A stretch of DNA of 64,000 nucleotides from the NCBI RefSeq assembly GCF_026571515.1, contig NW_026864408.1, positions 1 through 64,000 on the forward strand, written 5' to 3'. Position numbers and translations under genes: made by a program. This DNA is from Ruditapes philippinarum (lineage: Eukaryota). The notes below the pieces were generated by a model. The model saw nothing but the letters and a program-made list of their open reading frames with translations. It was not told the DNA's origin and searched no databases. Shown here piece by piece: positions 2,218 to 52,400 of this stretch; the stretch's first letter is position 1; each line of letters opens with the position of its first letter.

Positions 2218-3772
2218 TCACGACGAATGATGGGCAACTAACAACAGACAGATTGCAGTCACAGAAGTGCTCGGGTGAGCTGAACACATTGACTTACCAC
2301 GTTTATGCTTGATATACCATAGCTCTGCAAGCCGACCCTCCATCTCGTTTGTGTCCTGTCCATTCTCTGAACAAACGATCAGTTCTAGCAGTTCAGTCTG
2401 CCAAGTCTTTCTTAGACGCTCCTTAAAATCCGTGTAACCTTTAGCACCTTTGGATATAACTATTTTCAATAGTGTGTCATTCTTATCAGTAAGGTCCTTA
2501 TCCTGCAATATATGTTCATTACATTATCAATACGTTTGGAAAGTCAACGTTTAATGTCAAAATTGTGGTGTACTGAAGAAGAAAAAACAAGAGCGAACGG
2601 CATTTCAGAGATTTAAACGGCTTATTGCAAGTATCGTTTATGATTTGTCTTCTTTTTTATTTAAGTTCTAATTTAGAAAATCGATCTATATAGTTCCGTG
2701 TTCAGCTGAATAAGGATAATAATAGAGTGACGCACCGGTCCAAATGTTACAGTGTAAAAGGTATCATATTGGAGAAGTTATCATTAGCCAGTCAGATTTG
2801 CGGTATACTTTTCAAATATCAAACAATATAACAACTGTCAGCGTAACGCACTTGATAAGGATCTTATCAGTCTAATTGTTTCTGGTTAAGATGCAACATT
2901 ACGGCCGGTATATATTTCGCATAATCAAAATCTTATTTAAACTTGTTTTTCCTTGCATTACATTTAAATGCCTGCCTTTGTTACACGTTGAAGAATTTAT
3001 AAAGTAACTTCGTCGTAATGCTGGTTGTTAATGCATTGTTTTACCTTTCCAATCGATTGTTAAAAACTGTTTGTGTACGCATAAAATGAAACATCTCTTC
3101 CACATTATCATGGGCAAAAGTAGGAGTGTTAGAGACTTGCAGTGATCTAAGCTGTTGAGAAAACTTTATTAAATCCGGTTAATTCCCCCCCCCCCCACAA
3201 AGTGAACGACGATTTGTTGAATATGCATCATGGTTTAAAAAGGAACAACAAATAAATAAACAAACAAACAAACAAAAACACTTAAATGAATAAGAACATA
3301 AAACTTACGGGCGTAAGATTGTCTTACAAAGCCCTTTATTTGTCAAAGCAGAAATGGTAAAAAATAATAACGAATGTAATAAATGTAACGCGACATGATT
3401 AGCAAAGAAAGCTGTATCTAGAAAATTTCGCAATCATTTGAGATGGTTTTGCAGTGATACCAAAATCGTCATATTTTCCAGTGATATATTATATTAGTTG
3501 TAGGCATGAAATAAGATTATTCCTCGAATGCCTGCCTCAGTTATTATACTACAATCAATAATTCAAGTAAAGAATTATTGTCACCCAAACATCTGCTTTC
3601 AAACTACTTAATATCGTACCTTGATACTATTTCTTTCTGTGTCGGTGAGTAATACAAAGTCTGTTTTACAATCAATTACGGGATCAGGATGCATATACTT
3701 CCTGAGTGCATCGTAATTTCTATTTATGACTTGACGTCCTATATGCATTTCAATATCAGAAGACTCTGCCAT
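2218..3772 (-). CDS. CARD (caspase recruitment domain) protein, small, possibly CARD-only
   Basis: Coding exon 3772-3620 (acceptor ttaag| before 3780, donor |gtacga) reads MAESSDIEMHIGRQVINRNYDALRKYMHPDPVIDCKTDFVLLTDTERNSIK. It joins in phase 0 to an exon starting at 2502 (attgcag|) reading DKDLTDKNDTLLKIVISKGAKGYTDFKERLRKTWQTELLELIV..., a typical CARD helix 4-6 pattern. Strong donor |gtaagt at 2297. Read-through, or a 60-nt intron 2297-2238, both end at TGA 2220-2218. Splicing to exons left of the window is not excluded. Confidence 0.7.
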
Positions 3773-4096
3773 CTCCAGTCCTTAAATAAAGATAAATAAT
3801 TCATTTATTAAATACTCTACATAATCATAATACAGTATGTGTTAATTTTAACAGTATACGTGTATAGGAAATATATCGCATTAAAAATGATCCAAATTAC
3901 GGTACAAAATATATTCTTATCTTTCTTATCTATCTTTAATCTATACCTGACTCGATATAAAAGATAAGATAATACAAGACAATTTGTTTATTTGGGTCTT
4001 TTGTACAAACGTTTAAAAATATAACGAAGTTATGAAAGAAAAAACGTAAACAATACAAATGTTAAATTGTTTCGAGAGACTAAGAAAATGTTCATA

Positions 4097-6349: not shown

Positions 6350-7089
6350 TACTTCCCCACTTTGAGGAATGTCGCCCCGACATTCATAAAATATTAAAGA
6401 GGAAGGGCTTGAATCAGACATTGCAAGTAGTAAGCTTAAATCATAAAGTAACTAAACTACTAGGTATTACATAACTAAATCTAAATACTGAAGGCAATTA
6501 CAACCTGTGTGCAAATATATAATACCCGGGCAAAAAACCTTAAACTCAAGCATGCTCCACGAAAATACCGTATGCCGTGAATCGAGAAAAATATATGTCA
6601 CACGGAAACAAAATTTTAATTTATCAGTAGAACTGTGAATTCATTGAAGAGGTGCATTCTAAACAATAAATCCTTTATTTTTAAAGTACTGTAAAGTATA
6701 TTTATAAATTATCAAGGTAAAATATATGGTACATAGTATAAAACATAAAACGGAACACATCAGGTACCGAACAAAGCCCAACTTCAAAGCCTAGCGTTTA
6801 GGGCACACACTTTTTATTACTTGGGGGCCATATGCCGCTTTTCATGGAATGGCACGGAAGTGTCACATTGAAGGTTCCATGATAATCGCCGAATTAACAC
6901 ATCTGCGGATGTTTCTAAATTCAAATTTTTACTATATCATGTTTAAATGTTGAATTCTGCTTAAGCCGGTGCTAGGGGGCGTGGACGATAACTTGCACTT
7001 TCCAGTACCGTCCATGAACAGGCTCAATCAAACCGAGCCTGCAACATTTTCAATTTTGTTGTGTTGGACTTTCTTTAGGGATTCTGTTT

Positions 7090-8730
7090 TTCTCTATTTT
7101 TTGAGTGCTTCAATCTTCTCAGGATCTGTCTTCACACCATCAGCACTAACAATGTGACCCAAATACTGGACTTGCAGCTTAAAGAATTCACACTTGGACC
7201 CTTAAAGTTTAACATTGTGCATCTCAAGACGTTGAAAGACAGACTGAAGGCGACGGAAATGAGAATCAATAGAATCAGAAAAGATGATAATGTCATCGAG
7301 ATAAGTCAAACAGTCACGAAGGTGAAGTTCGCCCATACAACGGTCCATTAGACGCTGAAACGTTGCAGGGGCATTGGTCAGACCAAAGCCATTCTGTTGC
7401 ACTCATAGAATCCGAGAGGCCCAACACTAAAGGCAGTCTTTTGCTTATCAGATTCTTTGACTGGGACCTGCCAATAACCTGAGTGAAGGTCGAGTTTAGA
7501 GAAGATAGTAGAATCAATGAGAGAATCAATAGTTTCGTCGAAGCGAGGAAGGGCATAAGCATCCTTGATTGTACGGTTGATCAGTTTCCGGTAATCGATA
7601 CAAAAACGCAAAGACCCGTCCTTTTTTTCCTTGCTAACACAACATTAGAAGAAAAAGGGACTCTTGGACTCACGGATCGCTCCTGCCCGAAATCATGTCT
7701 CGTAAATGCTCACGTACCTCCTTAAACATCCCTGGTGGTATTCGGCGATACGGGTCTTTAGAAGGTGTGGGATCAGACAGATTGATTTCATGTTCGACCA
7801 AGTCAGTAGAACCAAGATCAGTAGGCCCAGAGGAGAAAATATGTTCCCACTGACTGAAGAAGGAAGTCACCTTAAACTTCTGTTCAGAAGTTAAAGTTTC
7901 AGTGGGAATAGAAATACCAAGGTCATTAAGAGTCTTGTCTGAATTGTGGGATTTATCAGCAACGCCCTCTGAAGGATCAATGGTGCGAACAACAGACACA
8001 TCATGTAAATTACAAAGAGTCATTCTTGGATAAATGGCGATAGATCTAGCAGTCAAGTTACAAACACGTACTGGAACCCTGCAAAAAGAACTACCAGGTT
8101 GTAATTTAACCAATCTAGGGCACACATTCAACATAAGAGGATCAGTAGACTCTGTAACACCAGAAGACATTTTGCCAATATGTCTCACCTTTCCCTCAAG
8201 TGTTGTTGTTTCGAAAGGCTTAACAATGATAGTCTAATGATGAAGAAGAGTAACAGGTTTGGTGACAATGTCAGGCAAGGAAGATATGATGTCAGAAAGT
8301 GGAGATGATGTTGACTCTGTTCCTGATGACTTCAAAACGTTCAAAATGTTGGTGCCTATTATCAAAGGGACTCTGCAGGAGTATTCTGTGTCTGGAACAA
8401 TCAGAATAGGACTGAAAAAGATTGTGATGAAAGACAAATATCAAGAACTGAATATCCAAGATATGGTACCTTAGACTCATTAGCAGAAGAAATATCCAAC
8501 ATAAAATCGAACAACTGTGACATGACAGGCTGGGGCTTTAAAGATTTGAAGAATGAAATTCCAATAGATGAAATCATAGAGCCAGTATCTATCAAAGCTA
8601 TAGTAGAAGTACCATTTATAAGAATTTCAGATTCATAAGAAGAGCCAACAAGAGGAAATGAAGAAGCAGGGTCATTAGAAGGGGAAGTATGACCTCTCAT
8701 CTGCCCTGCGATGGAGGTCGACTAGTTTAA
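7090..8730 (-). pseudogene. Gypsy pol remnant: aspartic protease plus reverse transcriptase, frameshifted; RNase H and integrase not visible
   Basis: Protease motif ALIDTGSMIS (ORF 8401-8700). RT motifs RFCIDYRKL, SKLDLHSGYWQV, KTAF, FGLTNAPATFQRLM and YLDDIIIFS are spread across ORFs 7378-7611 and 7202-7402. Recognisable similarity stops near 7090, only ~750 nt from the 3' LTR. Confidence 0.93.
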
Positions 8731-9784
8731 AGGACTGGCAGAGGTTTTGACTTACTGAGTGGAAGATCTCTCTTGTTTTAAACCCTTGAGTTCTCGATAC
8801 TAGACAGCCTGGATTCCATGCCTTCCATCTGCTTAGAAAGGGCCCTTATTACCTGAAGAAGTTTACTATCTAGAGTAGTGACACACTGCTGTGCAGGAAC
8901 AGACTCATTAGGAGTATTAGAAGTAGTAACAGAAATATTGGCCTGAGGTTGCCTGCCTAGAGGAAAGATGGACAGCTAACAAGGAAAAGCGTAAGTCTTC
9001 CTCAATGGCTGTCAACTCTTTACGAAGATTATTGAAGTTGAGGTCCTTCCGAAAAAGAAATCTAGAGGCATTCTTAAGCTGTATATCACGAAGGCCTGAC
9101 CACAACCTACCCCGCAACATCTCATCCTTGGACATGCTATCAAGATTGCAAGGTATCCTGCTTAGCAACCTCTCCAGACGCAAACTATAATCAGCAACAG
9201 ACTTATCCACCTTCTGCTGTTCATTATAAAACTGTTTCTTCAACATTTCAGTTGAATGAACATTACCATAAATGCCATCTAACTCATTCAAGATCTCATG
9301 AACAGTGGCATTTTCACCTAAAGAACACCTCCGTCACTGCCTTTCAATGATTTACGAATGGCCTCCCTGATGGTAAATGGTGGATAATTACCCTTATTTA
9401 TGTCACAATTGACATCATAGCGCCATATCTCAAACATTGACGAGTTGTATTTCCCATCTCCTGAAAAAGAAGGTAACTCAGGGATACGGCTAAGTACCAA
9501 ATCCCTATTTGTCACAAAAGACAAGTATGGTTGAGGGTTAGGCATGGATGGAGGAATGCTATAAACAGGTGGAGGAAAGTGGACCTGATGTGTATTCTAT
9601 ATGTTCTGCTGATATGTTCCCGGATAGGAGTAGGTGTAACATCAAATGTATGACTTGAGTGTATTGTATGAGGTGTACTTGCCATCACATTTACTTGAAA
9701 CTTACCAGATTTCTGTAACTGTTTAGCAAAAAATTCCAGATTTGCATCTGAATAGTCTATGGACTGAGTTGTACCATCTTCCAT
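8730..9784 (-). pseudogene. Gypsy gag remnant (PNMA/Ma-like capsid), frameshifted
   Basis: LPSFSG...FEIWRYDV...AIRKSLKG (9318-9545) and LDGIYGNV...FYNEQQK...SVADYSLRLERLL...LWSGLRD (8917-9291) are PNMA-type gag signatures, split over three frames. Confidence 0.85.
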
Positions 9785-11612
9785 GATGAAGTGAAAAAAA
9801 TTGATTGGGCAAAATACAAAATGAATGTTACTTGAAATTAAAGATTTGAAATGGCCCCAAAATGTACGCCATACACTATAAAAAGTGATTTACATCAGTA
9901 ACCAGTTTAGGTCTATATCGATGTAATAAAAAACAAACAATAGAAATAAAACAATTTTATTTCAAGAGAAAAACACAAAGACTAGAAAATAATCATTCAA
10001 CTTTATTCAAATTATGGCCCACACAGTGTACCATACATTACACACAAAATTCCAAAGTCACATGAACAGTATATTTATCTTAAAGTAGATTAGATCAAAG
10101 TTTGTCAAACAATAGATCTAATAAAACTGATATTCAGTCTCTATTATAAAGCAGTAATAAATTCAACTGAATAATATTCAGTGCTTAACTTACTTAATAA
10201 ATAACTTATTACAGACACGCTACAGGTAACAAGTCTATAAAATTCTATTCATGTGAGGTGCACAGACCCTTGTTAAGTGACTTGCTATAGTGTATAAATT
10301 TCAACTAATTTATGGTAATTGCAAGAGACACACAGGCTTGTGAAATTATATGCAGGAATTCTGTATAACAAACAATGTTCAGTCCAGTACTCTATACAAT
10401 ATCAGAAAAAAAAAATCCCAAAGACCTTACTTACATAGATTATTTATAAATTTACCTGCTCAGGCACAGACTCAACTTAATAGAAGTACACACAAAGCTA
10501 ACCGAATAAATAAATGTGTAAAGTTTCCTATCTCCTGATTAAGACAATTATTTAAATGCTAAATGTTTAATTTTTAGCTCATAAAGTAAAATAATATACC
10601 TATCAACAGACTTTTTATAATGACTAAATGAGAAGAACCCAAATTATCAACTTTTCAACTGTGATACTGAATAAATATTTCAAACCTACCTGTATACTTT
10701 ATTTATATTTAGCATTATTTACTCACAAGTCAACTACAATATTCTGTTCCTACAATAAATGCTAAACTATCCAATCTACATGCTTACTTCAGGCAAAGTT
10801 CTGGTTCAAGCCCTGGTTTTAATAAATAATAATACTATTATTATTATTATAGGTACAATAAGTAATCAGGTACAATAAGTTATCAGGATAGGATATGAAA
10901 TAATTCAGCTGTTGGATATATAATATCTAGGGTAATATTGGATTTATTGCAGTAAATGAACAATACCAGACTGGATGGAAATAATTTCAAATAGGGACAG
11001 GTGTAATATACTAGTTATTCAGACCTAGATGAAAGATAAAAGAGACAGAGTGTTAGCTCACCAACCACCTGATAGTTAAATGCTGTGTCTACATGTCTGT
11101 GAACTGTATCAATCTTCAAAATGCCAGCAACAGGATAAAAATCAATGTCACAGAAGCCTGAAGTACAAGGCTTTGTGGAATTCGACGTAAAATATACAAA
11201 GTCAAATATAAATATACATGTATATCTATGGTTCAAAACAAAAATTGATTTTCACATGTAGATCTTGATCAAGATTTTACACCGCTCAAAAAAGATAAAT
11301 GAAAAAATCAACCTAGATCTACATTTTTCAATATCTATAAAGGCACTATAAATTAAAATTAATAAGACACTTTATCCAAAATATAAGGAATGGTAGCCGT
11401 ACGGGTAGTAAGGCTAGCCAAAAATTTTACCGTACGTGAGTCACGACGACTACAGGGCCCCAAATGTATTGGCTAAATCGAAGCATTTTTAAAATTTATT
11501 GGAAGTGAAAAGATTTTTTTTAGTCTTTAAGCGAGGATTTTAACCAAGAAACAGCAATTGTCTTCGTATGTTTTAGAGATAAATCGCCTTGTTGGCTACA
11601 GTAAAAAAGTAC

Positions 11613-24099: not shown

Positions 24100-27000
24100 T
24101 CATGAAGCGGATGACTCAATCACACATTTATCGTCATCTTTGAAGGTGTCACACAATGCCTGGTGAAATTGTTTTGTTGTTTGAGAGAAAAGGTCTACAA
24201 GATACACATGTCTTACACTGCTGTATTGCTCCTCGCGGAAAAAGTTCCTCACAGCTCCAACAATCAGAGGAGCCGCTGTCTTAGCAGGCCATCTACAATA
24301 GCAAATAAGAAATGATTTTTTTAAACATATACATTTGGTCGATGTATACGAAGTTTAAATAGATTGCATCATTTCTAAGTCAGTTTTGGCATTTTTTTTA
24401 ATTGCTTAAACTTTGATCGTGTTTATTTGAGCTTACGTGCAAAGTCCATTAAAAGTAAGACTTACTTTAAGTAATCTTTAATTCACAAATACAATTAGTT
24501 TTGTATTTTTTAAATTTGTCCATAAGCTTATGTAAAAACATATCTCTCCTAAAGACATGGGTTCGACCAATTTGTTTCTCTTTAAATAACAGCGACAGGA
24601 TCAAATAAAAATAACATTACTTTTAACGCATGTGGAAGCTGTACATTTTTAAAATACAATTTGAGACGCTTAAGAAATGTACTTGTTAACTACTTATATT
24701 ACGTTATGAAAATATTAAGTTTAGAAGTAGCAGAAATGTACAAAAACCAATTCCTCAAGGAATGTAAAAATTAGGAGGAATTGTGCACTAAAAGGCTTAA
24801 CAAGCAACATGTTCAATTAATGGGTAAAAATATATTGTATATTAGATAAAAATGGAAATATATGAATAATGTTTACGACTCCTAATACATTATACCTCAA
24901 CCAGCAATGATGAATATTTCCAGGAAAGTGCTTGGTTTTTTAAGATCAACCGGATATATTGGTCCGTTTTTCTTACCGCGTTGATCGTTTCGGCCATATA
25001 TTGAACTTCTTAGGGTCTATTTAAAATCATAACATAACATAGCCATAGCATAGTATAAGTGGTATCTTTGTATTACTCAAATTTTATCGACAAACGTGGA
25101 TTTCAAAGTGACTTTGATCATGGAAATGACCATTGGGAAAGACTACTAAGATGGCCGCAATCGTTGTTTGTCGTACATATTATGATCAATATACAAATTA
25201 CAGTCAGTTAAGAATAAAATTTGCCCGAGAAAAAGTTTAGTTGAAGTAAAGGGAAATAAATGCCACTGGAATGAAACCAGAACCTTATTTGATGCAATAC
25301 ATTTTTGACTGCTAGATGCTTGTCAAATTTTTACGTCGGGAAACTCCATCCACCGTGTTGTGCTCAAGTAGACTCTTTAAATTGATAAATCTGTTGTGAT
25401 AAACTGTTGGCTAAATATACCCAATGGCACAACAAGGATTATGAACATGCGTTCCTCAACCTCAGTTCTGATATGACTTGATTGTCTAACTGAGAAGCTT
25501 ACCACCTCCTAGTGGACAACAACATTGATACCTCAATTCTGGGGCTCAAATTTTCTGAACAGTAATTTGGATTTGACTCCATAAACTTTTTTAATAAAAC
25601 ACTGCGGACCCAATTACACCTTCAATAATACTAATGTGCTTCCTATACTTTACAATAAGCTTTATTTCTTGTGATTTGATTGCATGAATTGAATGACCAC
25701 ACGGAGGAGCCGATATAAATTTGACTCCATGTTCTTAGACACTGGTACCTTTTCATATTCTAAGATAAGTGATGACCTATACTCGCCAATAGCAACATAT
25801 CTTCTTTGTCGGAAGATGTGCCATCACAGAAAATGTACACGTATCGCAAGGCAATTGCCTCATACTGATTTCAAGCATTTTATTTTCATGTGGCAGCTTT
25901 AACTCGATGTTATGGGAGTCAATGTAAATTGTTCTTTGGCATACCAATGAATACTCAAGATACCACGATACCGCGTGTAATATAAAATTACTCTTTCATT
26001 CACAATATCTCACATACAGTCATGTCCATGAGCTAATTGTACAGATAAAGAAAAGGAAACTCAATAGATAGTGTGGAACATAATAGGTTTTAATGATACT
26101 GAAGCGGTTTCTTAAAGCGTCAAAGGAGATATAATATAAAATAACGATTAAAAACATAAAATAAATTTACCCAGAATATCCACATCCTATTGCTGGTATT
26201 GCAATGGTGCGAGCTTGTTTCCTTGACGCCTCCATTAGCACACGCCCGACCGTTTTCTTCAGTAGTGTTTCCTCCTCGGAATCCCTTTTGTCGCACACAG
26301 GACTATTCACGTGAATAACGTACTTTGCTTGTAAATCTCCGGCCTCACTTACAAACGTATCACCTTCGTCAATACTGCGCTGTGTTTGCAGAAACTGGTG
26401 ACACGCTGCTTGAATGCTAGATCCACCTGTAAAACGGGTACACAGCATTTATTCCAAATAGTTATGGAACATTTATTTCAACTGTAGAACAAACAATTAC
26501 TTCTGCATTACTTGAATGTGAAAATAAGCGTAATTATACATTTACAGTTTAATGTTGCTCGATTTCTCTAATTTTATTTGTTTGTTGATATACAGACATA
26601 CAAACTTTGATTAGCAATTAAGTGTTTCTACTGTTATATATACAAATGAAGGAATATTATCAGACGTTTTTTGTGATAAGTTCAGTTTGCTTTCAGTTTC
26701 TATTTATAAGCATGGAATATTTTCAAACAGCAATATATTCAACAAGGTATGTGTACCGAAAATACTAAACAAAATGTTCAACCTGCCAAACAAATGACTC
26801 CCAGTCGAATGCATCCTTAAGCAGTAAAAAGCCCTGTCAAGTATTATGAGAAAGAAATAGCCCATAAAGAAAATAGTCACAATTCGGTTTTAATTACTAT
26901 AGAAATGATATGTTTACCCTTATCCCTAATTGTTTTTGATATTCCGGTTTCGAAAGAAAGGCATTTGTTCGTGGTGTTGACAACAGCCTCTGCCTCAATG

Positions 27001-30000
27001 TCAACTAGTGACCCTTTCATGATAAAAATTCGCCTGCCACAAGCCATTAAACACTCTGCTATCTTTTCAGTATCTTTTGAGTTGACTATTTCCGGTTCTG
27101 ATTCAGTTTCTTTATCTTCCTCTTGTTTTTGACAGCTTTCTTTTGAACTTCTTGCCCCCGTATCTTCATCTTGGTTTTCATTTGGACAAAATGAACGTGT
27201 TGGCGTGTACACTTTTTTAAATCTTCGACCATATAAGCAATCTTTATGACTGGGTGAACTGTTATCTTTCCGGCTCATGATCTTACTCAGGTTTGGTTTT
27301 GCACATCTATTTCGTGAAACTTTAACCTGACCGAAAAGGTCTTGAAATATTTTCAGAGCGTTTCGTTTCCACATTTTTCGTTTTCGTGACCATATGCAAG
27401 CGTCTCTATATTCTTCTTTCGACAAGGATCTTAATAAAATACGTTGTTTTTCACCTTGTTTTCTCTCCGGCCAAAGTATCTTTGCGTCAATATAGATCAT
27501 TGTTTCTTCAAGTTTCTCTCTTTCTTTCTGATTACCAAGGACATACTCTAATTCCTCCTCATTAAACTCTGTATATTCTATTTCATCTTCACTGTCATCG
27601 TCTTTGTCTCTAGAGGGAATAAACTTTGGCTTTGGTTTAATTTTGGGTTTTTGTTTTTGGGCGTTACTTGAGTGTTTGATTGAACCAATACCATGATGTT
27701 GTGCTCTTTCTCGCTCTTGCGTGATTGCTGAAATTAAGAATTCGTAAAGGCATATTAAGAAGACAATTTGTTTAACTTCTTAGCATAACTTTAAATGGAA
27801 AAGCATGGAATACGCATACAATTGCCTATTTTCCGATCAGAATTCAAATGCATAATATTAATTGCATCATGAGCAACTGATAAGGTGCTTATTTGTGTAT
27901 TTACGCAATAAATTGTACAAAAATCTTCACCACAATGTTAACGTAAAAGACCTACCGATATAAAAGTCCGGATCAAGCATTTTGGCAGTATCTTCTAGTT
28001 TACAGTCAATCAAAATATTTAGGAAAGACCTGTACCAGTCCATTACGCGTCGTGGAAGATACATTAACAAAATGCAAGCAGCTCTAAGTGCACCATGATT
28101 GTTCTCTTCAGATGTTATCTCTTGTACATCCTCTTGCGTGAACACTCCTTTGCTTAAAAGATGAGGCAAAAGCTCTGATGGTCTTATTAAACCTATAAGT
28201 TCTGGGGCAAAGAGTTCGACAATTCGTACAAAGTTCCTGTCCTCAGGGTCATATTCGCCATCGAGGATTCTCACAATTTTAGGGTAGCCTAAAACAAGAA
28301 TGCTTCATATATTTAGCTCAAATTGAATCATATCTGACAATATCATTATTCAAAATGATCTTCAAATATCTTTAACAGATGTCAAACAATTCAATCACCA
28401 TTAATTAATCACTTATCATTCTGTTAATCTTTTAAAATATCTTGGATTTGTCACAATTTCGATAACAAATTATTATATTTCACGACTGATGTATATAAAA
28501 CTTGTAGCTTTTAGTGAATGAAAACAAATATAGCTGGTTGTGTTATATGTGTGAATTGAATACAGAGACCAATATTTAAGGTATAAGTGAAACGCAAGGA
28601 CATTCTTGGTGTAAATATTTAATAACAAAATGTCTGTTCTTGCCGAGACGCTTAACATCGTCAATATCAATGGGTTGATTCTTTTATGTATAAGAAATCC
28701 CTTTGAACCTACGAACCTATCAAGTTTGAGAAAGACACTGTATCTACATAAGGGTTCCTAAAATTTTAACACTTTTAACACTTTTAAGTCTCTTTTCGTT
28801 ATAAGAACTGGAAATTTGGCAATTGTTATTTCTTATCTAATCAGCGACATATCAGATATATATTTGTGTAAAAAGTACCTCCATTTTGTTCCAAAGCATC
28901 CCTTAATGCTGCAAATCTCCCTGGATCCTCTACACTGTCTAATAACATATCTAAAGCTTTTCTAGATGCTCTGATGGGACTTTTTTCCGCCAAAATGTCT
29001 GATTTTTGGTCTGAAAGAGTACAGTTTTAGTACATTTAGGAATATAACGAGTTAGTTAATTAGCATAAAGAAGGTGTGAGAGACATAATTTATGTAAACG
29101 CGTCTTTTATTTAATCTAGAATTAGTGAACTCAAGACCCATAGGGGCCTCAACTTCCTGAAAATTTTAAAGACACCAAGAAAAGTCAATTTTAGTGAATA
29201 ATGAAGTTGTATTATTGAATATTGAACTTGTATTTGTGAATAATGAAGCTGTGATAGCTGTATCAGAGAATACTAAAGTTGTACTAGTGAATAATGAAGT
29301 TTTATTAGTAAAAATGAAGTTAAAATAGTAAGTAAGGAAGTTATAATCGTAAATAATAAAATTATAATAGTGAATAATAAAGTTGTATTAGTGCATAATG
29401 AAGTAATAATAGCGAATACTGAAGTTGTAACAGTGAATGAATAATGAAGTTATAAAAGTGAATAATGAAGGTGTATTAATGAAACGTGAATAATGTAGTG
29501 AAAAATTAAGTTGTATTAGTGAATAATTAAGCTGTAATAGGGAATAATGAAGCTTTATTGGGGAATATACTGTACAGTTATATGCTATTCTTCAAAATTC
29601 AAACATTTTAATAATTTTCACACAGAATAAAGCAGAATTACGTGCCACTTTGTAAACGTTAGATTTAAGTTTTATTTTAAATCATAACACAATTCATCAA
29701 AATATTTCAGCACCATTGCCAAAACAACTAAAACATTGAAGAGAGAAAGGGGGACAGAGGGGGAAGAGGAAGAGAGAGAGAGAGAGAAAAGAGCATGATC
29801 ACAATTTTACCTGGGGTATAACATTGCAAGTATTGGATGAGAACATCTGGTTTTATACAATGGCTGATGTAGATCAAATGCTTTCTCAGGTTCTTTTCAA
29901 TTATTTCATCTCTCGAATAGTTTGTATCTTCTGCCTCTTCTTGTTCTTCTTCTTCATGTTAAAAGAGATAGAATTGAATAAAATATTTTCTTTTTTTACA

Positions 30001-30272
30001 ATTTACATATCAATCTATAATTTTTTATTAAAACCATAAAATCCTATTAAAGATAGAAATAAAGACATAAATTTTTGTATTAGCTTGACTTCAAGGGCAT
30101 GGTAATTTATTATTTTAATCTTTTATATATTATTTATTTATTTATTTCATTTATTTATTTATTTACTATCTAAATTATAAATTGATTAATTTATTAATTT
30201 TTTATTTAATTATTTATCTTTTTAAACTTATTATTTATTGTAACTTACACACTCATTCATTCATTCATTCAT

Positions 30273-30318
<46 letters not shown>

Positions 30319-33300
30319 AATACATTGATTAATTTGTTTATCAAATTATNNNNNNNNNNNNNNNNNNNNNNNNNNNNNNNNNNNNNNNNNNNNNNNNNNN
30401 NNNNNNNNNNNNNNNNNNNNNNNNNNNNNNNNNNNNNNNNNNNNNNNNNNNNNNNNNNNNNNNNNNNNNNNNNNNNNNNTTAATTTATTCATTTGTTTAT
30501 TTAATTATTTATTGTTTTAAGCTATATTTATTCATCAATTAATTAATTGATTCATTCATTCATTCTTTCATTCATTCATTCATTCATTCATTCATTCATT
30601 CATTCATTTATTTATTTATTTATTTAACTAATACATTGATTAATTTATTCATTTGTTTATCAAATCATTTATTGTTTAAAGCTTTATTAATAAATTAATT
30701 AATTAATTTATTTATTTATTTATTCATTCATTCATTTATTTTATTTATTTATTTATTATTTAACTAAAACATTGATTAATTTATTCATTTGTTTATCTAA
30801 TTATTTATTGTTTAAAGCTATTTTTATTCATCAATTAACTAATTAATTCATTCATTCATTCATTCATTCACTCACTCATTCATTCATTTATGTTTTAAAA
30901 CTTTATGTATTTATTAATAAATAATTCGTTAATTTATTTATCTATTTATTCATTCATTTATTCATTCCTAAATTTATTTATTTATTTATTTATTTATTGA
31001 CATAATCTTAAATAGCTTTTAAATTACCCTTTCAAATACTCATTTAACACTTATTATGATGGGCCTTAAGCCCGTCTCACACAAAACACGGTTGGACACA
31101 CGATTCCCATACGGTATACTCGGTTATACACGGGTTGACTGGTACGAGTTTTGAGCTTCAATCGTGCTTGTGGATTAGTTGGCACGAATTAGACTCGAAT
31201 ATAGCACGAGTATGTACGAATTGAGCACGGATATACTCGGTCAAGCAAGGTTTGAACACGATTTGCATACGAATATATACGACTGCTGTACGGTTCCAAG
31301 TACGGTCTAGTACGGTCTGGTACGATTAAACACGACTTTTACTCGATTTACTCGACTTTCACAGGGTTTACATAGGGTCCCGCCGACTTTTGTTCGAGTA
31401 AAACTCGAAATATCAAACATTTGTGTATGTTTTGATATAAATTAACCCGTTTTGATGTCTTGGCTTTCGAAATTTCAACAAAGAACACCTGTATATAGAT
31501 CATTATAAAACTGCACGTTCGTAACGTCGCTTTTCATTGGATAATCGTGACGTTTAAATAGTTTTATATACACGGCTGTTGTCGATTTATAAAGAAATCT
31601 CGCTTTATTCCTCTAAAAATGATGCTTGCTGGGTTATATTTTACAAACAGCCGTTTATATAAGGCCATATAACCTGTCAACAATCTTTTTAACTAATATT
31701 AACATCAATAAATGAATAAAAAGGTGAAGCAATGTAAAATGAATGTGTCTTTTTTCTGTTGTGCAGCGGTTGCTGGAGGGTCCACCGAGCTGGCATTGGA
31801 GTCTGAATCCCTGGGAGACACGGTTATTGCCGGTTGGTCCTCCACCTTATCAGGGTCAATAAGTTTGAGTGGTCGGTGGGCCTGGATGGTTCTTCTTGTA
31901 TTCCTTCTATGCGTCCAAGACTTCTTCTTTGGATACATTCTAGTGTGATGCAGCAAGCACTATTGGTAGGGTGGCAGCAGTTAGTTGTGTTTTTTGTACC
32001 GTTCTTGCTGAGCCGTGTTAGACCGTACGAGGCAGTGTGAGACCGTGTATACCCGTACTTTACCGTGTCGGCCATGTATGTTTCGTATATGAACCGTATT
32101 GGTCATATGGCGATCGTATGAAACCGTGTGTGCACTGTTTTGAATTACCTATCTTGTGCAATTTGGTGTTAATCGGTGTATGTAGGACTTGGGGAGGCCC
32201 CTCGAAGTTCCCAACGATTTAATACGACCTTTGAAGGGTTTGGGGCCCCCACTCGGGGAAAATGGACTTCACATTTACGGGTATAAGGCCCCCTCATACG
32301 GTCTCCAACGGCCCCTTTACGGTTTGACGGGTGCTTATACGGTTGATAAACGGACAGGGCATCCGTACCATTTTTTTTTAAAATTTTTAAAAATCATACA
32401 CGGCTTACACGGATACACTCGAATTGCCCGAGTGTAACTCGGATAACGCTACGGTTAGTTCGGTTGAATGTACGGTTTACACGGGTGGCCAACCGTGTAA
32501 GCCGTGTGTCCTGTGTGAGATGGGCTTTATCGCTTGTTCAAGGAAAAGGGATTGGGTATAGTAAGAGGGATTGCAGTATTGTGACGTAATTTTATCGTGG
32601 TACTTCCTTCATCTCATTGACAATGAAGTGTGATAAAATGAATACACTTCGAAATATAAAGTCAAGTGTCAAATTATTATTCAAACACATGCAGATATTT
32701 TAAATACAATACATATACTATACTAGGCAACATAACCTTATTAACTGAAATAGTACGGACACCTTTTTTAATCTACGATAGTACATAAACCTACTTATTT
32801 CAAACCTGGAATAGTTACTTTAACTAATGAATATCCAGCATTTGCACTAAGTGATGTCATAATGTAAATCATTTACGGCTCCAAACATCAATTTAGCTTC
32901 GATTTGTGTTGTTGTTTTTTTTCTTCTTTTTTTCTTCTTTTTTGTTGTTGTTGTTTTTTTTTTTCTTTTTTTTTTCTTTTTCTAAATAAAAAATACAAAT
33001 ATTAAATGAACATTTTACTCTATTTATCTTCGATCCAAGTCAAAACATCCATATAGACTCCATAGTGTACGCTTGCATTCTAGCCTCGTTTTTATTTTTC
33101 AGGTCCAAAAGTTCCATATCAAAAGAATATTGTACTTGTAGAAACTGTACCATTAATACAAAAAATAGGTTAAGTATGTTTTTTTCCTAGGAATATGGTT
33201 GTGCAATACATGTATGTAGCAATTTATTGAGTATCGCAATATTTATCTTGCAATATGTATTGTAAGATGTTTTCAGATATCGCAATATATTAAAGCTATA

Positions 33301-34387
33301 AAATTTAAATAAAAACATAAAATTCTTTTAAAGATAGAAGTGTAATCACATTGCATTACCTTGACTTCAAATGACATTTACAATTTTACATTAACTTATT
33401 TAAACTTTTTCATTTACAATGCCATTTTAACACATTGTGCAATCTTTCATTAAAGGCAGTGCCTCTGACATACCATATATTGGGACATAATATTAAATGA
33501 TAAACTCTTTAATTAAGTCATTTAATATAGTTAACAATATATCGCAATAAAGTTCAATATGCCTGTAAATATTGCAATATATCGCAATATGATTTTTCTT
33601 TGCAATATCCACCCCTACTTTAGAATCTGCGGTGTGAAATAAAAAAAGTCCTTTACACAGGGTTTGTGTACAAACTGATTCTTTTTGGATTTGTACACTT
33701 TGCAAAGCCATAACGGGTGGGTTACCCCCCTCGTTCAAATAAAATTTCAATATAGGTTTAAATAATTTCAGTAGCGCAACGAGTAAAAAACCTAGTTTAT
33801 ATATTACAGTATAGCTGTTCTACGTACCTGAAGTATTTAAAAGTAGTAATTTTGTAAAACTAAATTTAGAATGTATAGCCTGATTTTTTGGTGACCTGTT
33901 GAAAATGTGTTTACAAGTACACATACATACCCAGTGCGTTAAGTACTACATACCATGCTCATTGATTGCTTCATTTTTTTCATTTATCACAACTTTATCA
34001 TCTTAATTAACTGTAATGCTTTATTACTACAGTACTCAACAATAAATTAAAGCGCTTTCTTTACATGTGATTTTTTTAAGTAAGTGAATTTGCATATTTA
34101 CCCGACACTTTTGGTAATTTGCCAGTTGTATCAACGGCAAAGTCCGTCTGCGTGTTCGTAGAAGCGCGTGCAGGTGTATGTAGGTGTACGTCAGACTGTG
34201 AGCCTTGATCTTTTGTATTACATTTCGTGATTGACGAACATTTTAAATGATTACGACAGAAGACATAATCATCTGGTGACATATTTGCAAATTTTAGCTG
34301 CAAAGACACGACAGGATCCTCGTAACTTGCCTCGGCTGACTGTTCATCAAGCTCTAACTTACACGGCCTTTTGTTTTCTTGGCTCAT
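24100..34387 (-). CDS. Tandem-CARD (RIG-I-like 2CARD) + PARP14-like KH segment + macrodomain protein, 716 aa, 7 coding exons
   Basis: Exons 34387-34102, 29951-29811, 29010-28879, 28288-27956, 27727-26918, 26426-26171, 24292-24100. All introns GT-AG, phases 1,1,1,1,1,2; 2151 nt open, TGA at 24102-24100. CARD1: LRKHLIYISHCIKPDVLIQYL...DPGRFAALRDALEQNGGYPKIVRIL. CARD2: IVELFAPELIGLIRPSELLPHLLSKGVFTQEDVQEI...DWYRSFLNILIDCKLEDTAKMLDP. Macro: KGSLVDIEAEAVVNTTN...AKYVIHVNSP...IAIPAIGCGYSG|WPAKTAAPLIVGAVRNFF. Exon 1 and the exon 2 acceptor are the least certain parts. Confidence 0.85.
29190..29560. repeat. ~21-bp minisatellite (gtgaataatgaagttgtatta)
   Basis: Many diverged copies in intron 2 of the CARD-macro gene. 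Confidence 0.85.
30120..31000. repeat. Compound (TTTA)n/(TTCA)n satellite with higher-order unit; contains assembly gap 30350-30479
   Basis: The spacer taactaatacattgattaatttt recurs between microsatellite blocks. Confidence 0.85.
31069..32526. mobile_element. PIF/Harbinger non-autonomous DNA transposon
   Basis: TIRs AGCCCGTCTCACACA / TGTGTGAGATGGGCT. 3-bp TSD TTA at 31066-31068 and 32527-32529. Dense subterminal ACACGG/TACGG/CCGTGT repeats. No transposase. Confidence 0.85.
33189..33618. mobile_element. Probable decayed hAT-type MITE with subterminal TATCGCAATA repeats
   Basis: ATCGCAATA/TTGCAATAT motifs cluster at both ends; right end cacccCTA; left terminus degenerate. Confidence 0.4.
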
Positions 34388-46400: not shown

Positions 46401-49400
46401 CAGTATATTTATTTTCAAAATCATTTCAAATGATGATTGGTTATTGACCAGAATGTAAGATGGACATGTCCGTTTAACTTTAAGATATTTAGCAAGGTAA
46501 GGAAATATAAACAAAGAAGCAACATTGGTCGTCTGTAAGGAATAGTGTTTTGCAGTGTTTTAATCATAAGACAAATACCTTTTTAAATTGATCCGAGAGT
46601 ANNNNNNNNNNNNNNNNNNNNNNNNNNNNNNNNNNNNNNNNNNNNNNNNNNNNNNNNNNNNNNNNNNNNNNNNNNNNNNNNNNNNNNNNNNNNNNNNNNN
46701 NNNNNNNNNNNNNNNNNNNNNNNNNNNNNNNNNCACACCCACTTTGTTTACATAATGACGTAATCATGTGTACACTTAAACAATAGAATGGGTGACACAA
46801 ATGTTTTAATCCCGCCAAAAAAAAAAAATGGATGCCTTTATGAATAAAAAATGGCGCTGAATAACAATAGAAAGCTTAGCACACAAATTAAACCCGCCAA
46901 AAAAAATAAAAATGGTTGCCTTATTAGATTTGAATAAAAAATGGCGCACTGTTCTTCCATAACAAAAGAAAACGAAACATAATTGTAGGGGTCACATAAA
47001 TATGGTCTAAAGTACACAATAGAAAAATGTTACCATAACTAATTCGGTCAAAATATACAAAGGAAAACTATAATCAAATTATTGGTTTAAACTATGAAAA
47101 GAAAATTAGGACAAAATATTATTAATAAGTCTAGACCAGCTGTGGTCAACTCATCTAATAAGCTACTTTAGTATCTAGTATTTCTTCTTCTTGATATTGT
47201 ATTTTACTATCATCAGAAAAATGTAAAGTTTAATCAATTGTTTACATAATGACTTAAGAGTGTGTACTTTATAACAATAGAACAGGTAACACTCCAAAAA
47301 AGTCAATCTTATACATGTAAATGCAAAATTACATTTATTGTTTTCTTATAATATAATGAGGCCTGTTTTGTTATTTTTCCAAAAATTGACATGTCATATT
47401 TTTGCACATGTTGACAAGAAACAAACCTATGCCACTTGTTTTGTATATAATTCTCTTCATTAAAGTTACTATGCATCACATCCAAGGCCAGCAATTCAAC
47501 CTCTCATTGAAGGCAAGTACTTTCTCTGTGGTTCATACAATGCTTGATCTAATTAATTTACTGTGTATTTCTAAAGCAGTAAATTTGATAAAACTTGATA
47601 GTCAGGTGGGATACATACAAAACAAGTTACCTTTTATTTAGAATTCATACCCAATTATTGTTTTCTTATAAGATAATGAGGCCTGTTTTGTCAATGGTTT
47701 CAACACCTACATGTATCTTTAGAACTCATTAGAGTAAAACAAAACAATAATTGTCAATGAATAATCCTTAATAAGAAAATAAATCTTTCTTTACCAGCTA
47801 GTAAATCTTGCTTTTATCATATTTATGGTTTAAACTCTTAACCAGACAATGTGGTTACCTGATAAAACAAACAATCCTTTAAGTATGTATGACCAGTATG
47901 ACCCCAGATGTAACATATATTTCAACCAGGTAATAAATCCACAAAGGGACGCCTTTCTGTGTCGATGTTTCGGATCAGTTATGAACATTCATTTATTCAA
48001 TGGAGAAATTTTAAATGATTTGATTTACCACTTTTAAGCGAGGATAGGAATTACAACCTAAAATTATATACATTGTACTGAAACTTTTTTTTATTCACAT
48101 TCTTATTTTTTATATTTTGATCTAGCAAAGATTAAACATTTTCTGCTGTTAATTGCCAGAACGAAGAAACCAATTAAATCTTACATTTCAACACTGAAGT
48201 GATAATGTCATCACCTTGGAATTTGTATAGCAATGAACCGTCAGATTTTTAACATCTGTGAAATTGATGTCAGCGCCAAGATAAACATTGGTCCTTTTAT
48301 GACTTGATAACAGAAAGAAACAATAATTAAAAGTTTTTATTTCATGTCAATAAGTAAGCCCTTTGTATACAGGTGTGTCCCTAAATTACTCACTTCTTGT
48401 CCACTATTAAAAACGAGTTCTTCCTTATAGTTGCCACAGTATAACTATTTTCCTGACATGCTTGAAGTGGTAATATGGATTTTACTTAATATTCAAAAAT
48501 ATCATCAGAGCAAAAACAGCTATTTGGTGATAGATTTTTATGTCATGTTTTCACATACCCATGACTAGATTTCTCTCTCCAGATAACTTTTTTTTGCATT
48601 TCAACTATATACACCCAGGCGCAACATGGATTAGTTGGACGATTTAAGAAAAGGATATACATAAATTTATAAACAAAATAAAACAAAGATCTAATAATAC
48701 AGTTTAATTTATTTATTACAGACTGCATTTACAAAAAGAAATATTTAAAATAAAACGCATTTGGCATATGATAAAAAAAAATGTTCCAATCATAATGTAC
48801 CACACTAACATTTGTCCTTTTGTCTTTCCAAAATATGAATAAATAATATAAACTTTCACATGTCTTTAATAATTTGTTCATTTATTGATAAAATGTCAGT
48901 ATTTATCACTACTAGTTTCTTTTTCACTGTCATCATCATCATCATCATCATAATCATCATCATCATCATCAAATGTTTCTTCAAGTTCTGGTAATGGGTA
49001 CTTGTCCATAACACGTTCTAACATAAATTTTCTTTTTTTAACAGCATACTGTATAGCTTCATCAGTTTCGAAATTATCTTCCTCTCTCAATCTTTTAACA
49101 GTTCCCATGATCTTTTTATGTGTAGGATTGCGCTGAAGTGCATACATTTTTCCAATAAAATCCAAATAAACTTCTCTGAATGCTTTATGATACACGGAGC
49201 GTAATTTTTCAAAAGCTTTATTTCTTATTTCTTCAAGAGAGCTATCAGGGTCTTCATTACGCATTTTACTGGCTGTTTCATTTAAAACGTCATCTCCTTG
49301 TTCATATGTGAGCTCTGTAAAATACTTCCAGATGTCAATATGTTTGTTCTTGTTAACATCATCATATTGTTTGCCATTGTCATTCCCTATAGTAGAAGAT

Positions 49401-52400
49401 TCATCGTCATAATCTTGTTCACTGTTATCGTCTTCTTCGTAATGATGAGATTTGGATCTATTAGGTCTCAACCGATCGAAAATGTTTCTATATAGATAAG
49501 GTTTACGATTTGGTTCCTCATCTGATGTATTTCCATCGCTGATATTATTTTCAGACATACTGTTCTTATGTTTGAGATGCGAATGCCTATTTAAATTGTA
49601 CTTTTTATTGAATTTTTTATAACACAAAAGACATGTGAATACCATTATTTTAAGCGATCAAATGGCAAAATTAATGCCAATTCTCCTTTTTATACTCCCA
49701 ACTAATTTATTTCGTTTCTCATTTTCTCGTTTTGCTTGCTAAGTGGCTCAATTGGGTGTTCATTAACTCATTTTGCTTGCTCAGTCGCTCATTTTATTTG
49801 CTCATTTGCTTATTTTGCTTGCTCATTTGCTCATTTGGTTGCTCTTTTGCTCATTTTGGTTGCTCATTTGCTCATTTCACTTGCTCATTTGCTCATTTGC
49901 TTGCTCATTTGCTCATTTCACTTGATCATTTGCTCATTTCACTTGCTCATTTGCTCATTTGGTTGCTCATTTGCTCATTTTACTTGCTCATTTGCTCATT
50001 TGGTTGCTCATTTGCTCATTTTGGTTGCTCATTTGCTCATTTTGGTTGCTCATTTGCTCATTTCACTTGCTCATTTGCTCATTTGCTTGCTCATTTGCTC
50101 ATTTTGGTTGCTCATTTGTTGCTCATTTGCTCATTTTGGTTGCTCATTTGCTCATTTGGTCGCTCATTTGCTCTTTTGGTTGCTCATTTGCTCATTTTGG
50201 TTGCTCATTTGCTCATTTGGTTGCTCATTTGCTCATTTTGGGTGCTCATTTGGTTGCACATTTGCTCATTTTGTTTGCTAATTTGCTAATTTAGTTGCTC
50301 ATTTGCTCATTTCACTTGCTCATTTTCTCATTTGGTTGCTCATCTGCTCATTTCATTTGCTCATTTGCTCTTTTTGGTTGCTCATTTGCTCATTTAATTG
50401 CTCATTTGCTCATTTTGGTTGCTCATTTTACTTGCTCATTTGCTCTTTTTGGTTGCTCATTTGCTCATTTAACTTGCTCATTTAACTTGCTCACTTACTC
50501 ATTTGGTTCCTCATTGCTCATTTTACTTGCACATTTGGTTTCTCATTTGCTCGTTTTGGGTGCTCATTTGCTCATTTGATTGCTCATTTACTCATTTTTC
50601 CTTGCTCAGTCGCTCATTTTAGTTGCTCATATGCTCATTTTGGTTGCTCATTTGCTCTTTTTGGAGTGTTACCTGTTCTATTGTTATAAAGTACACACTC
50701 TTAAGTCATTATGTAAACAATTGATTAAACTTTACATTTTTCTGATGATAGTAAAATACAATATCAAGAAGAAGAAATACTAGATACTAAAGTAGCTTAT
50801 TAGATGAGTTGACCACAGCTGGTCTAGACTTATTAATAATATTTTGTCCTAATTTTCTTTCAATAGTTTAAACCAATAATTTGATTATAGTTTTCCTTTG
50901 TATATTTTGACCGAATTAGTTTATGGTAACATTTTTCTATTGTGTACTTTAGACCATATTTATGTGACCCCTACAATTATGTTTTCGTTTTCTTTTGTTT
51001 ATGGAAGAACAGTGCGCCATTTTTTTATTCAAATCTAATAAGGCAACCATTTTTATTTTTTTGGCGGGTTTAATTTGTGTGCTAAGCTTTCTATTGTTAT
51101 TCAGCGCCATTTTTTATTCATAAAGGCATCCATTTTTTTTTTTTTTTTTTGGCGGGATTAAAACATTTGTGTCACCCATTCTATTGTTTAAGTGTACACA
51201 TGATTACGTCATTATGTAAACAAAGTGGGTGTGGATCCCCCCCCATTCATCACATTCATTCATTCATTCATTCATTCATTTATTTATTTATTTATTTATT
51301 TATCTGCTGTTTGGCCAATGAGTGACTTTGGAAATTGTAACAGAACACTTTAGTATAAATAAGCTTTGGAAAAAACAGCAAGTTTTAGTATTAATCGGCC
51401 TGGTTATTACCAGCAAACAAGTCTGGAAATATGCAAATCAAACACTCATTACACAAAAAAAGAGAAAATATTTGATATAAGAGCTTAGCAAATACATGAA
51501 ATGTGTATACATGTAATCGTCTGCGTCTTTTGGGTTTCAGCAAGGAGGAAATTTAAAGAGCTTTAGTACCATCTTATTTTCAAAAGATTCATCAGAAAAT
51601 TATAAAGATCTTTTAACACATTTTAGACATCAAAAGGCGGGTGAAAAGATTTTAATTATTTTCCGATGAAAATATTTAACGTATTTGATAAATGGGACTT
51701 TAAATAATTTTCATAACTTTTTATACAGTGGTGTATTCTTCAGAACAAAATCTTGTTGTGAAGTTTGAAAATACCTTGCTCTTAATATCTTAAAAATCTC
51801 GAATACCACAAACGCTGCATTGTTCTTTGTATATTATACTTCTCGGTGCTTTAAATACAGGTCATGATAACGGAGGCTGGCACCATGCCGTAAATACCTA
51901 CAGCTCTGGAAATCTGCCTAAAACTTTTACCTTTACTCTAAATGTTTATTCCGGTTTAATGGCTAAATGAAACATGAAATATACAATTGAAATAAATACT
52001 TAAAGCACTAAAAACGTGCAAAAACATTTTTGGCTGAGAAACAACAAGGTAAAAAATATGTATTTATTGCATTTTATTGGTGTTCATTTTCACTAAATCT
52101 TTTACTACATCTGTATAGGATTTTCTTCCCGTATGCAAGTTTATATTATGGTTGTTTCCAGGAATACCGTGCTTAAATAAAATTGATTCCATTCTTTTAG
52201 AAATTTTTGAGGAGGGGGGGGGATTATTAATTATCATTTTTGTGTTTAAACAATTTTTGTTTCGCGTTACTCTTCCAACATAAAACTATGGAAAACGTGC
52301 ATGTGAAAAATTTAATAAAATCTGAAGACAAAATGATTTTTCGTCTGTGTCGTGTACAAACATTTGTTGATTTGTTGATATAAAATTTCGACGTGTACAA

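Follow-up and report, generated by a model that had tools for sequence, protein, structure and literature searches.

Structure of the gene and its homologues

The window analysed here comprises the first 64 kb of contig C12895 of the Ruditapes philippinarum genome, whose assembly consists of 15,874 contigs (1.41 Gb). On the minus strand of this window, within an AT-rich region (about 32% G+C) that resembles invertebrate animal DNA, positions 34387-24100 harbor an intact seven-exon gene for a soluble protein of 716 amino acids. The protein combines two CARD-like domains with a KH-like block and a single macrodomain. Its seven exons, joined by a local script, yield 2151 nt, corresponding to 716 codons and one terminal stop. 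All six junctions are of the GT...AG type with matching phases. The junctions 27956/27727, 26918/26426 and 26171/24292 are perfect GT...AG sites with pyrimidine tracts; the remaining three were placed by demanding GT/AG and phase agreement. The lengths of exons 2 to 5 are multiples of three, and each of these exons begins and ends in phase 1 (symmetric 1-1). We note that database and folding searches were performed with single exons or with homologues, and that the joined 716-residue model was used locally for frame checks and alignments.

Exon 1 (34387-34102) starts with the first in-frame ATG after an upstream stop (start codon 34387-34385) and ends in phase 1 at the donor GTAAAT at 34101. 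It encodes a disordered N-terminal region of about 95 amino acids with two short conserved motifs, DQGSQxD and STNTQT. Exon 2 (29951-29811, 141 nt, phase 1-1) and exon 3 (29010-28879, 132 nt or 44 codons, phase 1-1) encode the first and the second half of CARD1, respectively. The acceptor of exon 2 is ambiguous by 1-8 codons, as an in-phase AAG run offers several AG sites. Exon 4 (28288-27956, 333 nt, phase 1-1) encodes CARD2, which is of the RIG-I/MDA5 type. Exon 5 (27727-26918, 810 nt, phase 1-1) consists of a linker rich in basic and acidic residues, a KH domain (27584-27330) assigned to the PARP14-type, type I fold, a second linker rich in Ser, Lys and Glu, and, at its end (about 27059-26918), the ~47 residues with which the macrodomain begins. 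The macrodomain core (Pfam Macro positions 21-108) is encoded by exon 6 (26426-26171), and its C-terminal part together with the stop codon (24102-24100) by exon 7 (24292-24100).

A HMMER search with exon 5 against 1.84 billion representative proteins retrieved eight relatives, among them P0001 (97% identity), P0002 (64% identity), and P0004, which aligns over residues 360-568. P0004 and three close variants, each of 716 amino acids, are encoded on contigs of 2.4-4.4 kb. These contigs are probably spliced transcripts, since they hold a 2.15-kb uninterrupted frame and not a seven-exon gene. Further relatives are RefSeq models of the hard clam Mercenaria mercenaria with 808, 761, 739 and 484 amino acids, all annotated as "uncharacterized protein" (loci LOC123549651, LOC123550671, LOC128554295 and LOC128554299; XP_045193845.1, XP_053391532.1 and others). 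These models contain two CARD_2 stretches and one Macro domain, together with weak KH_PARP14_1 matches. In total, the full CARD-macro architecture is encoded at no fewer than four loci of M. mercenaria; a fifth model, which is partial, has the same CARD pair and no macrodomain. The hard clam proteins are the closest named relatives, with 47-68% identity within the folded domains. Additional searches, one started from P0004 and one from a profile of five sequences, both ended at the same six proteins, none of them from outside clams, within the limits set by word matching and a length window. The gene is a member of a small family that is conserved in clams.

When P0004 and P0007 are aligned to the window by tblastn, the matches are colinear with exons 2 to 7 and respect the exon borders. 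For example, exon 2 is matched by residues 83-116 of P0004 and residues 1-25 of P0007, exon 3 by residues 114-160 of P0004 (3.9e-11), and exon 7 by residues 659-714 of P0004 (5.8e-15). The residues on both sides of the exon 4/exon 5 junction are conserved in the family alignment, and all full-length homologues end within 4 residues of the C-terminus of the clam protein. Among the positions at which five homologues are identical, the clam protein retains 74-77% within the CARDs and the macrodomain; for the KH domain the figure is 68%. The linkers diverge far more than the folded domains in the same comparison. By this pattern of conservation, the gene is an intact and constrained member of the family, and not a decaying copy.

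Intron 1 contains an assembly gap (Ns at 30350-30479), located 398 nt upstream of the acceptor of exon 2. One tandem array, (ATTT)n/(ATTC)n with a period of 136 bp, is present on either side of the gap; sequence of this type breaks assemblies. Exon 1 aligns from Met1 to residues 1-90 of the Mercenaria protein P0015 (BLASTP, 1e-7). The homology of exon 1 emerged only against Mercenaria proteins, and BLASTP of exon 1 against P0004 gave no match. In the family alignment, no homologue residues are unaccounted for between exons 1 and 2. Because no residues are missing at this position and exon 1 matches the N-terminus of a homologue, a coding exon is not expected in the gap and the frame is independent of it.

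Two further sequences related to the gene were observed. The proteins P0001 and P0009, each a 'hypothetical protein' of JGI/IMG on a contig of 1.7-2.4 kb, are 97% identical to exon 5 and read on into the adjacent intron. Since they run into the intron, they represent genomic DNA of this or a sister species that was deposited as part of a metagenome and processed with a prokaryotic gene finder. A second copy of the 3' part of the gene is found at the start of contig C10420 (5-2541; locus L003). It matches positions 24861-22087 of the window and covers only exon 7, some of the preceding intron 6 and ~2 kb of sequence 3' of the gene, with 85-88% identity on the DNA level and 85% identity of the exon 7 peptide. 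The copy may stem from a partial duplication, or else be a haplotig that has diverged badly. For exons 4 to 6, a search of the assembly gave no second copy.

An assembly gap inside a gene model, a prokaryote-style gene call (P0001) that begins inside exon 5, and a diverged copy of the last exon and its flank that stands alone on another contig are also what one would meet if the exon model had wrongly joined neighbouring CARD-only and KH-macro genes, or had incorporated a decaying PARP14-like fragment. We consider such an artefact very unlikely: the six junctions are canonical and in phase with the whole frame open, the protein has colinear counterparts on single short contigs as well as among RefSeq models, the flanks of the exon 4/exon 5 junction are conserved, and the gap is intronic.

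Profile searches of the genome yielded 63 matches to PARP exons, 19 to WWE, 126 to macro and 18 to RIG-I_C-RD; on C12895 they detected no PARP catalytic domain, no WWE domain, no second macro match and no RIG-I_C-RD. Pfam searches with each of the seven exons gave no helicase. The protein has no transmembrane segment or hydrophobic C-terminus, the highest Kyte-Doolittle mean over 19 residues being 1.15. Two candidate assignments were rejected on these grounds: a PARP14-like gene that continues downstream, as there is no PARP, WWE or further macro domain on the contig, and a MAVS-like anchored adaptor, as there is no transmembrane segment.

The structural claims of a first-pass annotation, which had been made from the letters of the window, are recovered in this analysis. 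Its seven phase-consistent exons and open frame of 716 residues are reproduced with canonical GT-AG borders and a single terminal stop, and the three junctions it had singled out (the first three listed above) are canonical GT...AG at the sequence level. It had described a single terminal macrodomain followed by a stop, in agreement with the Pfam Macro match of exon 6, the stop codon at the end of exon 7, and the likewise ending homologues. The absence of a PARP catalytic domain holds for the entire contig, and the homologues share the same C-terminus. Of the three outcomes that the annotation had named as speaking against it, two concern the transcript. The first, a continuation of the transcript into further macro, WWE or PARP exons, was not found on the contig, and the homologues end at the same point. 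The second, CARD and macro exons on separate transcripts, is contradicted indirectly by homologues that encode both in one protein.

Origin of the CARD, KH and macro domains

CARD2 is readily assigned. In single-exon searches, exon 4 matches Pfam CARD_2 (3.5e-13) and Pfam CARD (9.9e-8), and its best solved relatives are CARD1 of RIG-I (2.9e-5) and the CARDs of MDA5. CARD1 is split between exons 2 and 3 and can therefore not be scored as one piece in such searches. However, both exons are homologous to the two CARD1 exons of a RIG-I-like receptor (RLR) on contig C11982 (tblastn, 8.5e-7 and 6.4e-4), and the full-length homologues P0004, P0011 and P0014 each contain two separate Pfam CARD_2 stretches. 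A comparison of the family CARD1 with a profile of 28 CARD2 sequences by hhalign results in an E-value of 5.6e-4 and a probability of 30%, with 63 columns in register. The two adjacent CARD-like domains of RIG-I/MDA5 type that the first-pass annotation had proposed are thus confirmed for CARD2, by Pfam and by solved relatives, and are positive with weaker evidence for CARD1. The same division applies to the third adverse outcome that it had named, N-terminal domains that do not fold as death-fold bundles, which is contradicted by CARD2 and, on weaker evidence, by CARD1.

We also observed an isoform of a Mercenaria relative (P0016, isoform X2 of LOC128554295) from which exactly the equivalent of exon 3 is missing, such that the frame is kept and the second half of CARD1 is removed. 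The isoform resembles an inhibitory splice variant of human RIG-I in which CARD1 is deleted, and the exon-skipped form could be a regulatory isoform.

The closest CARD2 within the genome is located on contig C11982 (C11982:18797-30600; loci L001 and L002). The gene on this contig encodes two CARDs, DEAD/ResIII, Helicase_C and RIG-I_C-RD, and therefore constitutes a complete RLR. In a maximum-likelihood tree built from 28 CARD2 segments, the seven CARD2s that are fused to a macrodomain form one clade with the CARD2s of the RLRs on C11982 and C14448 (support 95/98). The introns agree as well. Three of the four intron sites within the tandem CARDs are at identical positions in our gene and in the RLR of C11982, the fourth is one codon apart, and all are in phase 1.

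The C-terminal half of the gene points to a different family. In a single-exon search, exon 6 matches Pfam Macro with 2.3e-19; among solved structures it is closest to macrodomains 1-2 of PARP14, with macroH2A1.1 in second place. In the same comparison for the macrodomain of P0004, PARP14 macrodomain 1 ranks first (8.6e-35), ahead of YmdB of E. coli, macroH2A1.1 and PARP9 macrodomain 1. Exons 6 and 7 align to macro exons in four PARP14-like gene clusters of the genome (contigs C5256, C351, C3262 and C12507) with the same borders, namely residues 568-653 of the model for exon 6 and residues 651-703 for exon 7. In the PARP14-like clusters, a KH_PARP14_1 exon is found 2-3 kb upstream of the macro exon, in the same order as in the gene considered here.

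The KH domain was the least secure part of the first-pass annotation. It corresponds to a conserved block of ~95 residues in exon 5 with invariant N, E-R, M, D, W-P, G, I-L-S-K and W positions. An AlphaFold2 model of the segment, computed from a 10-sequence alignment, has a predicted local distance difference test score (pLDDT) of 74.8 and the element order beta-alpha-alpha-beta-beta-alpha, which is the order of a type I KH domain; an earlier model of exon 5 alone, calculated with no alignment, had a pLDDT of 34 and was discarded. The top matches of the KH model in Foldseek and VIA-align are mostly type I KH domains, although with modest values (E-values of 0.13 and up, Z-scores of 5.5-6.5). 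They include vigilin, hnRNP K, FUBP1, Nova-2, PCBP2 and FMRP, as well as entries that are likely Krr1/Pno1 in pre-ribosome structures. Searches of the ESM Atlas with the KH segment and with P0004 brought no usable match.

On the level of sequence, a Pfam search with clam exon 5 gave no KH domain above threshold, contig C12895 is not among the matches of the genome search for KH_PARP14_1 exons, and tblastn of the 716-residue model against the four PARP14-like loci matched exons 6 and 7 and not the KH part of exon 5. As tblastn missed this part, the link of the KH domain to the PARP14-like genes required a profile-profile comparison. An alignment of the family KH block with 13 KH_PARP14_1 exons of the same genome by hhalign has a probability of 96.9% and an E-value of 1.6e-10 over 84 columns, as compared to an E-value of 0.73 for the reversed control. 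In addition, four homologues have sub-threshold Pfam matches to KH_PARP14_1. A KH fold homologous to the first KH domain of PARP14 is therefore supported by the predicted topology, the fold matches and the profile comparison, and the label given at first pass stands.

Both parent families are expanded in the genome, with at least 38 CARD_2 exons and at least 18 RIG-I_C-RD exons on the one side, and at least 126 macro, at least 63 PARP and at least 18 KH_PARP14_1 matches on the other. Because the CARD2 clade and the intron sites are common to the gene and genuine RLRs, and the borders of the macro exons are common to the gene and PARP14-like genes, the gene is, by these comparisons, a chimera of tandem CARDs from an RLR gene and a KH-macro part from a PARP14-like gene. 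The phase 1-1 symmetry of exons 2 to 5 is what exon shuffling needs. The earlier statement that the helicase has been replaced by an ADP-ribose-binding fold is hence fair in an evolutionary sense, given that CARD clade and introns are shared with a genuine RLR.

Another Mercenaria protein with tandem CARDs of the same clade is P0017 (LOC128554300, a partial model), in which the CARDs are followed by a P-loop GTPase segment instead of KH and macro. In its sequence, this GTPase segment matches a bacterial Roco/LRR protein, in the Roc domain (PDB 4wnr, 2.8e-6). The comparison suggests that the CARD pair has been reused on different C-terminal modules.

Ligand pocket and proposed function

The residues of the ligand pocket were read from alignments to PARP14 macrodomain 1 and to YmdB and mapped through the family alignment, that is, from sequence only. 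The NxxN motif is NTTN in the clam protein and NTTD in most relatives, such that in the latter the position of the catalytic Asn is occupied by Asp. Loop 1 reads F-E-T-G-I in the clam protein, as compared to H-Y-G-G-L in PARP14 macrodomain 1 and G-G-G-G-V in YmdB. Across the family, S/E-T-G replaces the Y-G-G and G-G-G of these enzymes, with only the last Gly kept, and the preceding His is replaced by Phe or Leu. Loop 2 of the clam protein is G-C-G-Y-S-G-W-P. The acidic residue that contacts adenine is Glu (residue 544) in the clam protein and in P0001, whereas all other aligned members have Asp; the metagenomic proteins P0001 and P0009 both have Glu at this position.

The macrodomain of macroH2A1.1 binds ADP-ribose and does not hydrolyze it. 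The clam protein resembles it in the single-Gly loop 1 and in a similar loop 2 of the form G-x-x-G-aromatic-P, which together are the pattern of an ADP-ribose binder with no hydrolase activity. It differs from macroH2A1.1 in the absence of a histone fold, in its cytosolic context, and in the Glu as the acidic residue that contacts adenine. Because loop 1 has a single Gly, the His of the hydrolases is absent, and the catalytic Asn position is Asp in most members, these features argue for a pocket that is non-catalytic and belongs to a reader rather than an eraser. Within PARP14 itself both functions exist, with macrodomain 1 being a hydrolase and macrodomains 2 and 3 being readers (PMC10499325, PMC10470015).

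The opposite assignment has to be weighed at this point. The macrodomain might be an active ADP-ribosylhydrolase that is brought by the CARDs to assemblies of the RLR/MAVS type, where it removes mono-ADP-ribose and thereby adjusts signalling in either direction. PARP14 macrodomain 1 and the deacetylase YmdB rank first among the solved relatives of the family macrodomain, the former hydrolyzes protein- and nucleic-acid-linked ADP-ribose (PMC10499325), and the clam protein keeps the Asn in NxxN. Nevertheless, with the substitutions in loop 1, the exchange of His for Phe or Leu, the Asp at the catalytic Asn position in most members, and the resemblance of the pocket pattern to the non-catalytic macroH2A1.1, we regard an eraser as an unlikely explanation.

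Several known systems share part of the architecture. RIG-I/DDX58, MDA5/IFIH1 and the RLR on C11982 have N-terminal tandem CARDs of the CARD_2 type in common with the clam protein, but continue with a DExD/H helicase and a C-terminal regulatory domain (both present in the C11982 gene), in place of which the clam gene has KH and macro domains. As helicase and C-terminal regulatory domain are lacking, RNA sensing is not expected from the RLR side of the protein. PARP14 (ARTD8/BAL2), PARP9 and PARP15 are alike in the KH_PARP14_1 homology, in the closest macrodomain being PARP14 macrodomain 1, and in the borders of the macro exons. In contrast to PARP14, the clam protein has one macrodomain and not two or three, and its loop 1 is without the His and the Gly-Gly of the hydrolytic macrodomain 1. 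Also in contrast to PARP14, no WWE or ADP-ribosyltransferase (ART) domain was found, with no search having been aimed at RRMs, and the protein carries CARDs, which are present in no described PARP14. MAVS-type adaptors consist of a single CARD and a C-terminal transmembrane anchor, whereas the clam protein has two CARDs and no anchor.

In oysters, Kaur, Iyer, Burroughs and Aravind (2021, PMC8195603) described proteins that link DED-TRADD-N to KH/RRM, macro and ART domains. Both cases are lineage-specific fusions in bivalves of a death-fold domain with KH and macro domains of the PARP14-like type; the oyster proteins, however, have DED and TRADD-N heads, several macrodomains and a retained catalytic ART domain, whereas the clam protein has tandem CARDs and no enzyme.

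The Mercenaria proteins of LOC123549651, LOC123550671 and LOC128554295 share the N-terminal motifs, two CARDs, the KH domain, one macrodomain and the C-terminus with the clam protein, with 61-68% identity in CARD2 and 53-58% in the macrodomain. They differ in the lengths of the linkers; LOC128554299 lacks the KH segment, and all Mercenaria relatives keep the adenine-contacting Asp. A search of the literature revealed no paper on the CARD-macro architecture, or on RIG-I-type tandem CARDs combined with KH and macro domains and no PARP domain. The view taken at first pass, that the architecture is not a named family, accordingly stands with respect to publications, yet its members are already present in RefSeq as uncharacterized Mercenaria proteins.

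Taken together, the protein probably acts as a soluble adaptor, reading ADP-ribosylation and signalling by way of its CARDs. The macrodomain, possibly with the help of the KH domain, would dock on mono-ADP-ribosylated targets, presumably made by the many PARP14-like enzymes of the genome, or on PARP14-like complexes. By clustering on such targets, the RIG-I-type tandem CARDs would oligomerize and would then seed a MAVS-like CARD adaptor or a CARD-bearing effector, such that ADP-ribosylation is converted into an innate immune signal. It is known that tandem CARDs of this kind nucleate MAVS filaments in vertebrates. As for the KH domain, it may bind single-stranded nucleic acid, or else mediate protein-protein contacts, by analogy to the KH-like domains of human PARP14 and PARP9/DTX3L, for which protein-protein contacts have been reported (PMC11080071).

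The tandem CARDs might also act by themselves. As a decoy with no helicase, they would compete with true RLRs for the CARD adaptor, and the KH-macro part would serve only localisation or stability. Helicase-less or CARD-truncated RLR isoforms act on the downstream CARD adaptor in this manner. The CARD pair is indeed closest to that of a genuine RLR, the Mercenaria isoform P0016 skips the equivalent of exon 3 and thereby breaks CARD1, and many CARD_2 exons of the genome have no RIG-I_C-RD match on the same contig. Conservation of the KH and macro cores, however, equals that of the CARDs, which speaks against a passive tail and for a C-terminal half whose function depends on a ligand. We therefore consider a mere decoy improbable.

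For the adaptor that reads ADP-ribosylation, five points weigh on the other side. The Glu544 in place of the adenine-contacting Asp could weaken or retune ligand binding; the closest solved macrodomains include the hydrolases PARP14 macrodomain 1 and E. coli YmdB, leaving room for eraser activity; the assignment of CARD1 as a CARD is weaker than that of CARD2, according to the hhalign values given above (probability 30%, E-value 5.6e-4); the KH segment of the gene itself is below the Pfam threshold and its structural Z-scores are modest; and the joint transcription of the CARD and macro exons is deduced from homologues. With these points included, we judge the chances of the whole explanation, an intact chimera of RLR CARDs and a PARP14-type KH-macro part that acts as a reader of ADP-ribosylation, to be evenly balanced.

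A further-reaching possibility, which we put forward only tentatively and hold to be doubtful, is that clams have an undescribed class of cytosolic immune sensors in which ADP-ribosylation, and not helicase-bound RNA, is the input to CARD signalling of the RIG-I/MAVS type. If true, the expanded PARP14-like enzymes would, in the course of infection, place the ADP-ribosylation that is sensed on proteins or nucleic acids, and the RIG-I-type tandem CARDs would be a portable output module that is placed on a helicase, on KH-macro, or on a Roc-like GTPase (LOC128554300).

In mammals, antiviral ADP-ribosylation (PARP9/14/15 against viral macrodomains) and signalling by CARD filaments (RIG-I/MDA5 to MAVS) are studied as separate arms of the response, and we know of no protein that connects both arms physically. 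The gene and its clam relatives would be a natural fusion of a CARD output module with an ADP-ribose reader module, and, with the protein being small, soluble and modular, the link between the two arms is directly testable. The origin of such an architecture can be followed closely in this gene, with its phase-1 symmetric exons and with intron positions that it shares with each of its parent families, and the case further supports the view that the immune receptors of bivalves diversify through shuffling of death-fold domains. We note that the claim has to stay modest: all parts are known, the putative reader/adaptor being built from two known antiviral families, bivalves often shuffle domains in this way, and RefSeq already contains the family, although under no name.

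Other features of the window

A candidate for a small two-exon CARD gene is located on the minus strand at 2218-3780. Its exon 2 (2221-2523) has a sub-threshold Pfam CARD match (E-value 0.057), and its exon 1 (3608-3772) has no match. Between this candidate and the gene described above, at about 7080-9890 and mainly on the minus strand, long open stretches are found that look like a retrotransposon, with peptides that resemble gag, aspartic protease and reverse transcriptase. The window contains a second gap of Ns at 46602-46733. Finally, the plus strand harbors a long, coding-looking tandem repeat at 49675-50576, which is open in all three plus frames and has peptide units such as CSFAHL/LLICSF.

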